From assembly GCA_025594325.1 (NCBI GenBank), contig JANHCV010000001.1:3038001-3102000 (forward strand): a stretch of 64,000 nucleotides of DNA, in the 5' to 3' direction. Made by a program: the position numbers and the translations under genes. Under the pieces are notes generated by a model. It searched no databases, had not been told where the DNA came from, and saw only the letters and a list, made by a program, of their open reading frames with translations. This DNA is from Blastocladiella emersonii ATCC 22665 (lineage: Eukaryota > Fungi > Blastocladiomycota). Positions 23,697-29,654 of this stretch are shown piece after piece (position 1 is the first letter of the stretch; every line of letters starts with the position of its first letter).

Positions 23697-24078
23697 TGTT
23701 GCTGCGGACCCCCGCTCTCCCTGCCTCCCGTTTGACTGTCTTTGCCGTTTGAATACATATTTGACCCCACCCACCGCCTTTCGATGGTTGCTAGTCGCGC
23801 GAGACGGGCGTGGTCCGTCGGGCCGATGCTATGGCGGTCCACATGTGACAAAAGGGTAAAACATTCCCGTTTCCTTCGCGCTTCGACTTTTGTCTCGCTG
23901 AAACTTCGCGGAATCTTCCCGCGAGCAGGGAACCCTTTCCGCAAGCCTTCCGTGGCGCCACATCGGAACGGGCCGGAGAGAGCCGGGTCATGTGAGGCGA
24001 CGCCACAGCTCCATCTCAGCGTCGCCGCTGCCTCGCTGTCCCTCTCCCTTTCCCCGATCCACATGAAGCGCATGCACC

Positions 24079-24957
24079 ATGGAAAACTCTGAACCACTTA
24101 ATGCAAACTCCAGCAACGAACTCGCCAACGCACACATCGCCGCGGCTGTCGCGCGCGTTGAACATCTTATCCGAGGCGCCCAACGGGACGTCCGTCTGTC
24201 GACCGACGATCCGACACGGCTTGCACTAGCTTCGGAAGAGCTCGACGACGTCGTGGATACCATCGATCGCCTTTATGATCACCTCAATCGCGACTGGGCC
24301 AACTACCGCATCGCCCACTGCCGCCGCATCCAGGACGAAATCCTTCACTTTTTCTTCGCGCCCGAAGCTCTCATCCGCGGTGGCCATGGCCAGCCTCTTC
24401 CCGGCGCACTCCCTGGGCGCGGTTCGCTTTCGGGTCTTGTTACTCGTATCGCAACAGGCGGTCGACCTGCTTTTCACATTCAGCCCAGGTTTCTTCTCTA
24501 CCTGAGCAACTATCGCATGCTACCAATGACGAAAATTGCTGCTATGTTCAAGATCTCTACGAGAACGCTTTATCGTCTCATCGACAAAGCTGGAATCAAG
24601 GATCAGATCGGCCACGCCAGGATTTCTGATGCACGGCTTGATGAGCTTATTCGCGAATATCTTGTCACGCACCCGTTGAGCGGCTGGCGCATGACTTTGG
24701 GCCATCTTCAGTCGGTCCTTTGTCGGCCCGTTCAGCACGCGCGTGTCCGCGACTCGCTCCGCCGCGTAAACCCTGGCGCCGTCAAGAATCGGCGCTACGC
24801 GCAAATCTCTCGCCGCGAGTTTCGCGTCGCTGGTCCAATGGCGCTTTGGCACCACGACGGCTACCACAGGCTCATTCAGTACGTTTTCCTGCCTCGCTCA
24901 CGTTATGCCCACTCCCTGAGTCGTCTCAATCCCGTCTGAAAACGGACTTGTACTAAC
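24079..24957 (+). pseudogene. Truncated eukaryotic IS3/IS481-like DDE transposase (HTH plus start of integrase core)
   Basis: HTH-like LPMTKIAAMFKISTRTLYRLI; second helical unit LDELIREYLVTHPLSGWRMTLGHLQS...RVRDSLRRVNP; RREFRVAGPMALWHHDGYHRLI containing the first catalytic Asp. An intron donor follows at 24879 with branch TACTAAC at 24951-24957, but there is no usable acceptor and no remaining core exon. Confidence 0.75.
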
Positions 24958-25029
24958 GTCTTGCCGCCGCCGAACGTCTCGCCGCCGTCGCATCTGGCCA
25001 CCCCGAATCTCTTTCATCCGAAGCTTGCC

Positions 25030-25881
25030 ATGTACGTGGCGGGCGGTGGCGACGTGTCGCGTCGTCGGTTCCTTCACGATACTTTTGAGAACCACCGCCG
25101 CGACCTTCCCGTAGAGCTTCGCGCGGTTGTCGACGGCCTCATCACCCAGGATTCTGAGCAGTTCTCCAGCGACGACGAGAAGCTGGCCAAGATTAAGACC
25201 GCGTACGTCAACGTCTCCTGCGAGGACATCGTCGATACGGCTCCCCTCGAAGCAATTTGCACGCGTGGATCTTGCATGTGTCAGACGCACTTCGGCTTCA
25301 TGAATCCTGGAGCGAGCGGCTACGACTGGGCGCGGTGGCTGTTCTGCCACGCGTACGGGTTCCCGCTCATTGATGCGCTTGACTCGTTCCACCACGGACT
25401 TCTTGGCCCTGCTGGACTTCCTAGCCTCTTGAATGGCTCGGCTCTTGCACTTGCTCGGGTCTTTCTCTCACACAAGGGATTTGCGCTGCCCGGCCCCAAG
25501 GACGTCGCCGATTGTTTTGTGGCAGACGCGCCAACGCCCGACCCTCTTACTGGAACTTGGTGGAACGACCTCGTGTACAGTTCCCTGCTCGATTGGCTCA
25601 AGACCAAAACTCGAGTGCAATGCGGAAAGCTCATGAAGGCGCTTACAACTGACCGGCGCGCCTACATCGACGGCAAGCTGAATACCGTGGACGTTGTCAT
25701 CTCACCATTCCCACAGGAAGATCGCGACAGGCGTCGTACCAAACCGTTCGTGCACCCTAGGACGTGCATCAAGGAGGTCGTTTTCTACATTCACGACTCT
25801 CGATTTGTGAATCCGTGGCCCTCAATCCGCGCCTGCCTTTTGGGTCTCATGGATGGCGAGATTACTTTTCACACTGGCTAG
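25030..25881 (+). CDS. Minimal HECT-like E3 ubiquitin ligase domain protein inside the transposon island (possibly 5'-truncated)
   Basis: C-terminal LLDWL...GKLMKALTTDRR...KPFVHPRTCIKEV...CLLGLMDGEITFHTG* matches the HECT C-lobe pattern (F.TG...LP.AHTC...L..AI...GF), with catalytic Cys at 25765-25767 and Phe at position -4. Confidence 0.6.
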   Translation: MYVAGGGDVSRRRFLHDTFENHRRDLPVELRAVVDGLITQDSEQFSSDDEKLAKIKTAYVNVSCEDIVDTAPLEAICTRGSCMCQTHFGFMNPGASGYDWARWLFCHAYGFPLIDALDSFHHGLLGPAGLPSLLNGSALALARVFLSHKGFALPGPKDVADCFVADAPTPDPLTGTWWNDLVYSSLLDWLKTKTRVQCGKLMKALTTDRRAYIDGKLNTVDVVISPFPQEDRDRRRTKPFVHPRTCIKEVVFYIHDSRFVNPWPSIRACLLGLMDGEITFHTG

Positions 25882-25987
25882 AGATGTGTCTGTCGCTGGT
25901 ACTTGTTCCTGTTTCTTGTTCTTTGTTTTTGATCTAGTTGTTAGATTAGTCACTTGATGCCTCGCGAACGAGGAACCGTCCGTCAGT

Positions 25988-26284
25988 GGACACGTTGCGC
26001 AATTCGGGCCTCTCCCCAAATCTTGAATGGCTGGGCGCGTCACGCGACGCGCCGAACCGCAACGCAAGCGACCTGCCACGCCTCTCGACAAGCGCTGCAC
26101 TCGCGACTCCCTGCAAAGCGAGGGCCGAACTTTCAGGCCCCGCTTCCGCGCGTCGGCCGCGTTCCGCGAGCGGCGAGAGGCGTGGCAGGTCGCGGCGGCG
26201 CCCGCAAGCTGGCGGCGGCGCAGGTCGCGTGGACGCGCCAGCCTTTCAAGATTCGGGGGGAGGCCCGAATTGCGCAACGTGTCC
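25988..26284. mobile_element. 297-bp non-autonomous MITE with about 54-bp terminal inverted repeats and AGT target-site duplication
   Basis: Left TIR GGACACGTTGCGCAATTCGGGCCTC... (25988-26041) versus right TIR (26232-26284): first 25 bp perfect, 3 mismatches and 1 indel overall. AGT flanks both sides (25985-87, 26285-87). Inner perfect 20-bp inverted repeat at 26068-26087 / 26174-26193. Confidence 0.85.
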
Positions 26285-26529
26285 AGTGAGTGCGACGCGT
26301 CTCAATCGCGATGTGAGACATCACGTGATATCGCGACGCGTCCCAAACGCACGTCACCCGACGCGAAAAATAGGGGCACATCCAAATCTTTTCTTAAAAG
26401 GGATTCTGATGATTACCTTCAGTGTAGTAACAGTACTATAACCACAAAGCATACATCCGCCGTTGCGGCTATACATTCCCACAATCGACAAAGACGATCG
26501 TTGACACACGCGCGCGCGGGCTCAAGTAG

Positions 26530-28469
26530 CAGGTGGCCAGCGTAGTCGCGGCCCAGGTAGCGCTGGATAATACGTTCGTTGGGCGAGTCGCTGCAGATCT
26601 CAAGCATTATGAGGTTGAGCAGCTCGTACTCGTTGTTCGGCTCGCGTTGACGCCTGGTGCGCTCCGCGACGACGAGGTACGGCCCGTTTTTAACGGCTTC
26701 CGCCTCTCCGAGCGCTATTTGTTGGCCTCGTGATCCCACTGGAGCACGAGATCGCCGACCTGGATCGTCGCGTCGCGTAGTTGGTGCGGGCGCGCGGCAA
26801 CGCGGCCGTTGGCGCGCGACTTGGCGAAGCAGTGAGCCGCGAGGGCGACGTTCGACGCGTGGGCCTGGATCTGCGCCGAACGCGCGGCGAGGGCGACGTC
26901 AGCCGAGGTCGGGACTGTCCGATCCCACGTCGGGAAGAGGACCTTGGCGGGCCTGCGCGGTGCGCGCGCACACGAGCTCGAACAGCGAGCGACCCGTCGA
27001 CTCGCGGACCATGCAGCGGTCGGCGAAACGCGTCTCCGTGAGGTTCGCGTCGTGCGCCGGGTTACTGGCCGAGAGCTTGGCAAGGGCACGGATCAGCGGC
27101 TTGTGGCCTGACCCGACGCCGCCATTGGCGCCCAGGTTGTACAGCGTGACGTTGACCAGGCGGGAACCGACCAAGTAGGCCCAGTTGGCTACGAGGGCGG
27201 AGCCGCACGACCCGTTGTTAGTGATGATGCGCTTGGGGAACCCGTGGCGGTGAGCGAGTCGGCGGAGGAGGTCGAAAACGTGCTCGGCGACCATCAAGGG
27301 CACGTACTTGGCCTCAGGGTATCCCGTGAGCAGGCAGCGGGCGACGACGAGCGTCAACGAGGCCTTCGTCGCGCCCACTTGGACGTGGTCGAGATCGATC
27401 TCGTCAAACGGCACCACTGGAACGTCGCGCCCGCCAAGTAGGTCCCGATCCTGAGCTAGCGACCAGCGCTGGCACTCGTTGTCGCACGTCTCAACGATCC
27501 GCTGGACCGTACGACCATATTCCGCCAGTAGTATCGGGACACGACCTACTTGAGCGTCGCCTTCTGGCCGCGGTGGCCGAGCCCGTTGTGCAGGAACACC
27601 AGGACCTTCTGCTGCGCGTCGCGGGCGACGACGACAGGGCGCGGCCTGAGCTTCCTCTCGGCGACGCGGTACAGGAGCCCGTTGTCAGCGAACCGGTGCT
27701 GCGCAGCACACGAGCGGAACAGGTCGGCGTTGCGCGTGCTGGTCGCCGACTTGGGCATGACGTATGACGAGTAGTAGTCGTAGATCTCCTGGTGGTACGC
27801 CGTGTACCCGTCGGCGAGATGGTGGTGACCAGCCATGATCTCGGCGGCCGTGACGCGGTCAAGACCAGCTTCGACCCACGCATCGAGTTCGGCGTCCTCG
27901 ACCGTGCCCGCCTTGCGGTTGCGGACCGTCTCCACGCGTGACAGCGCGTCGGCGAGCACGTGCTTTTCGCGCGAGATGTGCTTCATCTGGATGTTAAACT
28001 CGCGCGCCGCCGAAAGCCACCGCCCCATGGCCGGGTCTAGCGGGTCGGTGCTGTCACTGAACATGCTGGCGACGGCGGACGAGTCGCGGCGGCCGTTGAG
28101 GTACGGGCGCAGCTTGTGCGTCGCCACGAGCACGCGCTGCGTATTTTTGAGTACCGTAGACTTGAACCGGACTGGGTGCTCCGAGTCGACGTCGTTCTCA
28201 TCAACGCGCATGAGCGCAGCGCCGACGCTGACGTCTGAAGTGTTGACGTACAGGACGAGCTCAGCGTCGGGCTTGACCTCAGCGGCCTGCAGCGCGAGGA
28301 TGTCCTCAACGATGGCTTTGACCTTGTTGAGCGTAGCGGCGGGCTCGGCCGACCAGTTGATAAGCGTGTCGGGCAGCGCGCCGTCGCGTCGGCGGGCGAG
28401 GTCAAGGAGCGGCTCGATGAACGTCAAAAGGTGCACGACATAAGCAGGTTGAATAGAGACTGAGCGCAT
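26530..28469 (-). mobile_element. Degenerate Ty3/Gypsy pol fragment (RT connection, RNase H, integrase zinc finger and core, GPY motif); no LTRs or RT core seen
   Basis: INWSAEPAATLNKVK, LVLYVNTSDVSVGAAL, KHISREKHVLADALSR, LHNGLGHRG, HGFPKRIITNNG and NGPYLV lie across several frames with frameshifts and stops; domain order is RH then INT. Confidence 0.88.
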
Positions 28470-29654
28470 CGTTCCTCACGGCACCCCACTGCAAGGTCTC
28501 ACGGTGCACGCACAGGGTACATGACCAGCGGGAGCAACGGGCCAGGATGCCTCCTCGTGGCATGTGCGCTCACGTTTACGATGAGCAACCCGGGACTTTT
28601 CAGTGTGTTGAGTGGTGCGTGGGTGATAATATGCTATATTAGATTACATTGCATCGAGTGTCTAGGGTCCGGGGGTGGGAGAGCGGGAGCTATAGGCCAG
28701 CTGAAGGCAGAGCGAGCGGCAGAGCGGTGGCGGGAGGCGGTTCCGAGGTCACCCGAGCGCCACTCAGGAATCTTCGAGCGAAACTTCGCGCGAAGTTCCC
28801 GCCGAAACCCTTTTGTCTCGAAGAAGAAATCAACGGAAATTCCGTGGAGGCCTTCCCACTTCCCTTAAAAATTCCTTGAAGATTAAATCAGTCTAGCTGT
28901 GCTTTTTGAAGCGTAAAACGAACCGGAAGTGAAGTGGAACCTTTTGTCAGGGATGGTACGCCATACGATGCCCTCTGCGGCCGTCCAGGAATCGGCACGG
29001 GGCTCGACCTGGCCAGGACGGCCGCCGCCGGTCCCGACCCTGGCCGTCGCCACGGCCGCAGTTGTGCCAGTTGCGCGTTGTGGCCGGCCACAGCCGGCGA
29101 GAAGGCCCGGGCGGAAAAGGAGGATCGGCGCAGCGCGAGAACGCGATGTGCGAGACATGCACGTGCGCCTGAGCTGCGCCACCGAGATCGCGTCGTCGCC
29201 GGCCGACCGCTCCCTGGGAACGGCGTCACGCATCGCTCGCCTCGGCAGCATGTTTCTCCACGCCCGCGGCAACGGGCCCGCGGAGGCGGTGATGATGGGC
29301 AACAGCGTCCGAGACCGCGGCAGCGGCTAGCGCTCTCCCACGCTTTCCCTCAGCTGCGCGTCTCAGCGTGATCCATCTCACCCCGCCGCCACGATGCCGA
29401 TCCCACCCGCCTCCGCCGTTGCCGAGCGGCTCGGCGTCCCGCCGCGCTCGCTGCTGTTCAGCGGGCCGCTGCACCCGCACCCGGCCGCGCACCCGCCCAC
29501 GCCGCTGCCGCTCCTGCAGCCCCCACACCTCGCGCGCGTCTTCACCCCTCCGCTCCCGCGTCGCCTCTCGTCCTCCCCGGACCTCCACCATCCACGCTTT
29601 GCCCCGCTCAGCAACCTCTCTGACACCACCACCACACCCACCACACCTACCACG

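Follow-up and report, generated by a model that had tools for sequence, protein, structure and literature searches.

Within a 64,000-nt window of the Blastocladiella emersonii ATCC 22665 genome (contig JANHCV010000001.1, positions 3,038,001 to 3,102,000 of the forward strand; the window is the whole stretch of DNA that was analysed, and all coordinates below are counted from its first letter unless a contig is named), an element of 5136 bp occupies positions 23830-28965. Its left terminal inverted repeat (23830-23855, plus strand) starts with TATGG and pairs with a right repeat (28940-28965, minus strand) that ends with CCATA; 20 of the 26 positions are complementary between the two arms (77%), with the outer 7 and an inner stretch of 10 positions identical and little similarity beyond. 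Immediately outside the repeats, the hexamer CGATGC is found in two perfectly matching copies, at 23824-23829 and at 28966-28971. IS3EU transposons are characterized by TA..TA termini and 6-bp target-site duplications (PMC10045372), and the fungal members described so far end in TAYGG..CCRTA, have inverted repeats longer than 30 bp and are known to carry passengers, a TET/JBP dioxygenase and an alpha-kinase (PMC12730594). The TATGG..CCATA ends of the present element fit the fungal consensus, and the CGATGC duplication on both sides has the length reported for IS3EU. No other TAYGG/CCRTA pair with identical 6-bp flanks was observed in the 64-kb window, for which the chance expectation was roughly estimated at about 0.06, and in the genome the terminal-repeat pattern was detected only at these two places. 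As the termini and the duplication match published IS3EU features, positions 23830-28965 represent one insertion of an IS3EU/GingerRoot-type DNA transposon. The first-pass annotation of this region had placed a putative ubiquitin ligase gene inside candidate terminal inverted repeats and had called it possibly transposon-borne; the extension of the repeats to their full 26 nt, the perfect duplication of the target site and the diagnostic IS3EU termini strengthen this part of the proposal.

The element contains two long open reading frames on its plus strand. The upstream one, ORF1 (24079-24939; 286 aa, in a frame of 290 codons), corresponds to the N-terminal part of an IS3EU/rva_4-type transposase, in which a helix-turn-helix region (with weak HTH matches) is followed by the first catalytic Asp in an LWHHDG motif. 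Its match to the Pfam rva_4 model is limited to model positions 2-24 and ends at ...LWHHDGYHRLIQ, with an HMM score of 10.5 bits that was not equalled by any of 2000 shuffles. In addition, ORF1 shares 32% identity over 155 aa with P0001, which belongs, as do five metagenome loci, to the Agaricomycete family of "integrase core domain" (Pfam rva_4) proteins. By sequence comparison, the homology of ORF1 to IS3EU/rva_4 transposases can thus be followed to the first catalytic Asp, and no further. Six-frame searches of the element and the genome found no complete rva_4-type DDE transposase, only positions 2-24 of the model, and when all six frames of the complete element were screened for concealed remnants of HECT or rva_4, none came up. 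Since only this short part of the model is present, the element is a defective member of the IS3EU superfamily. Two loci on metagenome contigs (L030 and L033) contain near-identical transposase genes of the Agaricomycete rva_4 type in an AT-rich fungal genome; the gene of L030 is interrupted by in-frame stops and that of L033 is open through two exons, and they are members of a multi-copy, decaying IS3EU-like family.

The downstream frame, ORF2, is the one to which ligase function had been attributed. It is free of stops from 24940 to 25881 (313 codons, with TAG at 25879-25881), and its start may be placed either at TTG 24961, as in the ORF listing (306 aa), or at ATG 25030, as in the first-pass annotation. 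The reading frame is present as originally described, on the plus strand with its stop at 25881, and the C-terminal residues quoted for it are correct (...TFHTG, then stop). It is co-oriented with the transposase, as had been stated, and indeed lies in the same frame as ORF1, the two being separated by one TGA (24937-24939). It also shares the lower G+C content of the transposase, which is 0.58 in ORF2 and 0.57 in ORF1 versus 0.69 in the window; likewise, GC3 is 0.68 in ORF2 and 0.61 in ORF1 versus 0.90-0.96 in neighbouring host genes. The codon-position G+C of ORF2 (0.61/0.45/0.68) is coding-like, with the lowest value at the second position, which is also the lowest in ORF1. CpG depletion, or RIP-like decay, was considered as the source of the low G+C content and was ruled out by CpG observed/expected ratios of 1.2-1.4.

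The sequence between the two frames resembles an intron of 145 nt (24879-25023, plus strand), with GTACGT at 24879 as the donor, a perfect TACTAAC at 24951 as the branch point and its first AG at 25023, and the in-frame TGA falls inside it. The homology of ORF1 ends exactly at the consensus donor. Splicing at the consensus sites, however, would shift the frame by one and lead to a stop after about 30 codons, and the frame is kept only by a non-consensus donor at 24883, four bases downstream of the consensus one. The ATG at 25030 is located 7 nt after the acceptor-like AG, within a transposase-like motif that is described below.

Downstream of ORF2, two further mobile sequences lie inside the element. 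A nested MITE of about 300 bp (25985-26287) has perfect terminal repeats of 24 nt and belongs to a family of at least 15 copies with termini TGGACACG...CGTGTCCA, whose members are 89-97% identical and are distributed over 10 contigs. In all nine copies with examined ends, the left flank reads A-N and the right flank the same N followed by T, a pattern suggestive of A-N-T target sites and of a duplication that is very short; two of the loci (L018 and L019, among L016-L024) have identical flanks and may have arisen by segmental duplication. The second sequence is a Ty3/gypsy pol remnant on the minus strand (26899-28469), with RT_RNaseH_2 and RT_RNaseH matches (E 1e-5), a zinc-finger motif and a degenerate integrase core. 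Its GC3 of 0.85 is host-like, unlike that of the IS3EU ORFs, its other genomic copies are only 64-71% identical, and CpG depletion was not seen in it either (observed/expected 1.33). In addition, a subterminal direct repeat of 23 nt (GAAACTTCGCG...CCCGC; 83% identity) was observed at 23900-23922 and 28780-28802; the first copy lies about 70 nt in from the left end, and the second, which falls within a palindrome, about 165 nt in from the right end. The repeat may serve as a binding site for the transposase.

Searches of the 32.6-Mb genome (21 contigs) with ORF1, ORF2, their DNA, a six-frame rva_4 profile and the terminal-repeat pattern returned this locus only, and the element is therefore a single copy without an autonomous partner in this genome. 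The suggestion that a DNA transposon family carries ORF2 finds no support in these results: the element, both ORFs and the terminal repeats are single-copy, and no relative of ORF2 was found. Beyond the genome, neither a word-index search nor an exhaustive phmmer search of 1.84 billion representative proteins identified a homologue of ORF2. A sequence search of the PDB gave no match, no Pfam family was obtained at E<=10 for ORF2, its halves or the antisense ORFs, and tblastn of ORF2 against the contigs of ORF1's relatives was negative as well. In these searches ORF1 and ORF2, the putative exons, were used as separate sequences.

A relationship between ORF2 and the transposase is suggested by the sequence that follows the intron-like spacer. 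The first codon after the AG, at 25024, opens the decapeptide LAMYVAGGGD, which aligns without gaps to WGFYVHGCID, the strand of the second catalytic Asp in an alignment of 35 sequences comprising the Agaricomycete relatives of the transposase. This decapeptide ranks in the top 0.086% of the 111,535 six-frame 10-mers of the window (p about 1e-3), and if the junction is read as Q|L, the spacing between the two Asp residues equals the 17 residues of the family. The weak colinear similarity to the transposase core extends over positions 25024-25185 (plus strand), where the YV.G..D.SR motif of the second Asp is followed, over the next 50 or so residues, by a weak alignment (z about 2) with a DDE triplet near the expected Glu. 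Together, ORF1 up to the junction and ORF2 from 25024 amount to about 550 aa, in line with a rough full-length estimate for the family that was derived from fragments. Because of the motif match, the 17-residue spacing, the core alignment, the common frame and codon composition and the total length, ORF2 probably started out as the second exon of the transposase gene. In that case, ATG 25030 lies inside a strand of the transposase and does not mark where a gene of its own begins.

Several observations stand against this transposase-remnant reading. The signal to rva_4 is confined to the first 10-55 residues of ORF2, and past them no significant similarity was found: hhalign of ORF2 with the 35-sequence alignment gave a probability of 0.09%, its HMM score was reached by 137 of 2000 shuffles, and the conserved motifs of the C-terminal half of the family gave a global z of only 0-1.6. 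The catalytic core is normally the best conserved part of such proteins, yet here the less conserved N-terminus in ORF1 is still recognisable. An in-frame splice requires the non-consensus donor, an open frame of 313 codons is somewhat unexpected in a decayed relic (p about 0.02), and the language-model neighbours of ORF2, residues 1-195 included, are HECT fragments and not integrases. Three further matches to the transposase that had been picked out by eye in ORF2 ("LE..GLLD", "VF..RI" and "WN") were rejected as chance on the same C-half values.

The HECT neighbours bring us to the claim that ORF2 encodes a minimal HECT E3 ligase, for which two hallmarks had been cited, a catalytic Cys and a Phe four residues from the end. 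Both residues are there: the C-terminal 115 residues of ORF2 (25534-25878, plus strand) show a weak colinear resemblance to a HECT C-lobe, with Thr-Cys at residues 268-269 and Phe 303 of 306 at position -4, as in the genuine HECTs of this genome, the latter being a single residue and weak evidence. The surrounding motif is interrupted: in KPFVHPRTC the P and H of LPxAHTC are kept, the L and A are lost and two residues are added. The Thr-Cys is 38 residues from the end, whereas the catalytic Cys of HECT enzymes is expected at about 32-36 residues and that of an authentic HECT protein encoded in this genome is at 33. Descent of ORF2, or at least of its last 115 or so residues, from a HECT domain, either as a captured 3' fragment of a HECT gene or as a highly diverged passenger or fusion domain with Cys269 as the putative catalytic residue, is nevertheless favoured by a protein-language-model atlas, in which the ten best named clusters for the whole ORF2 are all HECT (0.90-0.89) and the first 24 matches for residues 1-195 alone are HECT (0.86). 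The similarities of 0.86-0.90 are below the confidence marks of the tool, however, the accompanying values (recognition 1589; shared features 155, and 82-109) lie within its range for chance matches or distant relatives, and residues 1-195 may have been embedded in the context of the whole protein. In a forced global alignment of the last 115 residues, D, W, Y, K-L, T, R, G, L, P, H, T-C and the -4 Phe occur in the HECT order, with a z of 3.2 that exceeds 400 shuffles and 38 control segments from host proteins; when the profile was rebuilt from six sequences and the gap costs were changed, this value dropped to 0.7-2.2, although it stayed above 34 controls, and the N-lobe profile gives a z of 1.4. 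The best local hhalign and hmmsearch pieces are also colinear with HECT (ORF2 207-238 versus HECT 211-242), the 306 aa equal the length of a HECT domain and end the protein, as HECT does, and passenger genes have been documented in IS3EU elements (PMC12730594).

Against HECT descent, Pfam reported no HECT match at E<=10 in either the complete ORF2 or the two halves. With the same library, an authentic isolated HECT tail of 115 aa from this genome scored 6.4e-33. A six-frame scan of the genome recovered about eight ordinary HECT genes, ORF2 not among them. When ORF2 was compared by hhalign with five of the genome's own HECT domains, the probability was 0.1%, and with all filters off the HECT HMM gave ORF2 -3.4 bits, a score also reached by 160 of 2000 shuffles. 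AlphaFold2, run without an alignment, yielded no usable model (pLDDT 37.7 for the whole ORF2 and 35.8 for the C-terminal 130 aa), and Foldseek with the model of the 130-aa segment returned phage portal noise only; the exhaustive phmmer search retrieved no HECT protein. A fold, HECT or other, was not obtained from these models (pLDDT 36-38), and a minimal HECT E3 ligase finds no support in Pfam, hhalign, phmmer or structure prediction. We regard HECT ancestry of ORF2 as unlikely, and "HECT E3" as a lead at best. A more specific version, in which the transposase frame continued into, or was joined to, a HECT-like domain of extreme divergence with the Thr-Cys and the -4 Phe retained, would amount to a transposon-borne, possibly self-regulating ubiquitin-ligase module that is visible to language models and not to profiles; it appears to us quite unlikely. 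The genuine tail that served as a control, L011 (C20:666831-667175), is an isolated HECT C-lobe piece situated about 11 kb from a nearly identical full HECT gene, L006 (C20:655133-656032), so HECT 3' ends have been duplicated in this genome; similarity between L011 and ORF2 was not detectable. The literature searches turned up no paper that describes a HECT passenger carried by a transposon. Were ORF2 a working HECT module, it would have no known precedent as a ubiquitin ligase carried by a DNA transposon, and it would suggest that transposons can manipulate the turnover of host proteins or of their own.

ORF2 might alternatively be an independent, lineage-specific accessory gene starting at ATG 25030, a passenger with neither a HECT nor a transposase fold. 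Its want of homology to anything searched, its coding-like composition, a frame longer than 98% of shuffles and the passengers documented in fungal IS3EU elements (PMC12730594) are all compatible with such a gene, but its frame is that of ORF1, and a second copy or a relative that would show conservation was not found. Since ATG 25030, 7 nt after the acceptor-like AG, lies inside the motif resembling the second catalytic Asp, ORF2 is probably not a separate accessory gene, and we consider this explanation unlikely as well. It could also be argued that ORF2 is not a protein at all and consists of stop-poor, decayed transposon DNA that is open by chance. In dinucleotide shuffles of the region, frames of at least 313 codons occurred in 21 of 1000 cases (p about 0.02), so that the length of ORF2 alone is modest evidence for a gene; moreover, the sequence is TpA-poor (observed/expected 0.48), and neither a homologue nor a confident fold was obtained. 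A chance frame is very unlikely, however, in view of two long frames (313 and 290 codons) on the same strand and in the same frame, a GC2 that, in the manner of coding sequence, is clearly lower than GC1 and GC3, and an ORF2 start that matches a transposase motif.

Taken as a whole, the reading that we prefer is that of a dead IS3EU element in which ORF2 is the broken second exon of the transposase followed by an orphan tail, to which we assign a probability of about one half. In this reconstruction, the transposase gene starts at 24079, its homology to IS3EU/rva_4 transposases covers the helix-turn-helix region and ends at the first catalytic Asp, and the frame then reaches the 145-nt spacer. 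ORF2 continues that frame and opens exactly after the spacer with a stretch that resembles the strand of the second catalytic Asp (p about 1e-3 to 1e-2). Recognisable similarity to the transposase is lost after about 55-75 residues of ORF2, and the remaining 230 or so residues, which have no public relative, may be either a segment that was replaced or rearranged or a tail specific to the lineage. The gene is broken at the junction, where an unspliced transcript would run into the TGA and a consensus-spliced one into the frameshift. Given that no other transposase of this type was found in the genome, the element is an immobile single-copy relic, which holds the gypsy fragment and later received the MITE. 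ORF2 itself is most likely without enzyme activity, and its HECT-like C-terminus is weak and probably fortuitous.

The evidence points to an ordinary object, a single dead member of an already known transposon superfamily that bears an orphan tail. The locus contributes a clean insertion of the IS3EU type, bounded by diagnostic ends and a target duplication, in a very GC-rich genome of 32.6 Mb that has no other copy. The locus is also a useful test case, in that a language-model neighbourhood and a human-style reading of motifs agree with each other and every profile method disagrees. The HECT-passenger reading would be of consequence if it proved correct, but the evidence so far is insufficient to carry it. 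Compared with HECT E3 enzymes (PF00632), ORF2 resembles them in the Thr-Cys, the Phe at -4, the weak colinearity with the C-lobe, the length of 306 aa, the C-terminal position and the language-model neighbours, and differs from them in the absence of HMM or profile significance, the interrupted LPxAHTC, a Cys whose distance from the end is 38 instead of about 33 residues, a C-lobe alignment broken by a 10-residue gap, an unrecognisable N-lobe and E2-binding region and the lack of a predicted fold.

The likeness to IS3EU comprises the TATGG..CCATA termini, the 6-bp duplication and a helix-turn-helix followed by an rva_4 core that starts with LWHHDG, and the nearest relatives are Agaricomycete "integrase core domain" proteins. 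Unlike described IS3EU elements, it has shorter and more divergent inverted repeats, of 26 nt at 77% instead of more than 30 bp, a catalytic core recognisable only to the first, perhaps the second, Asp, and about 230 orphan coding residues in place of the transposase remainder; furthermore, it is single-copy without an autonomous partner and contains a MITE and a gypsy fragment. In the passenger-carrying fungal IS3EU elements (PMC12730594), the passengers are recognisable enzymes, present in multiple copies beside an intact transposase, whereas the single copy found here combines a truncated transposase with extra sequence for which no homologue is known. What the present element has in common with them is the superfamily itself and the presence of extra coding sequence between the terminal repeats.
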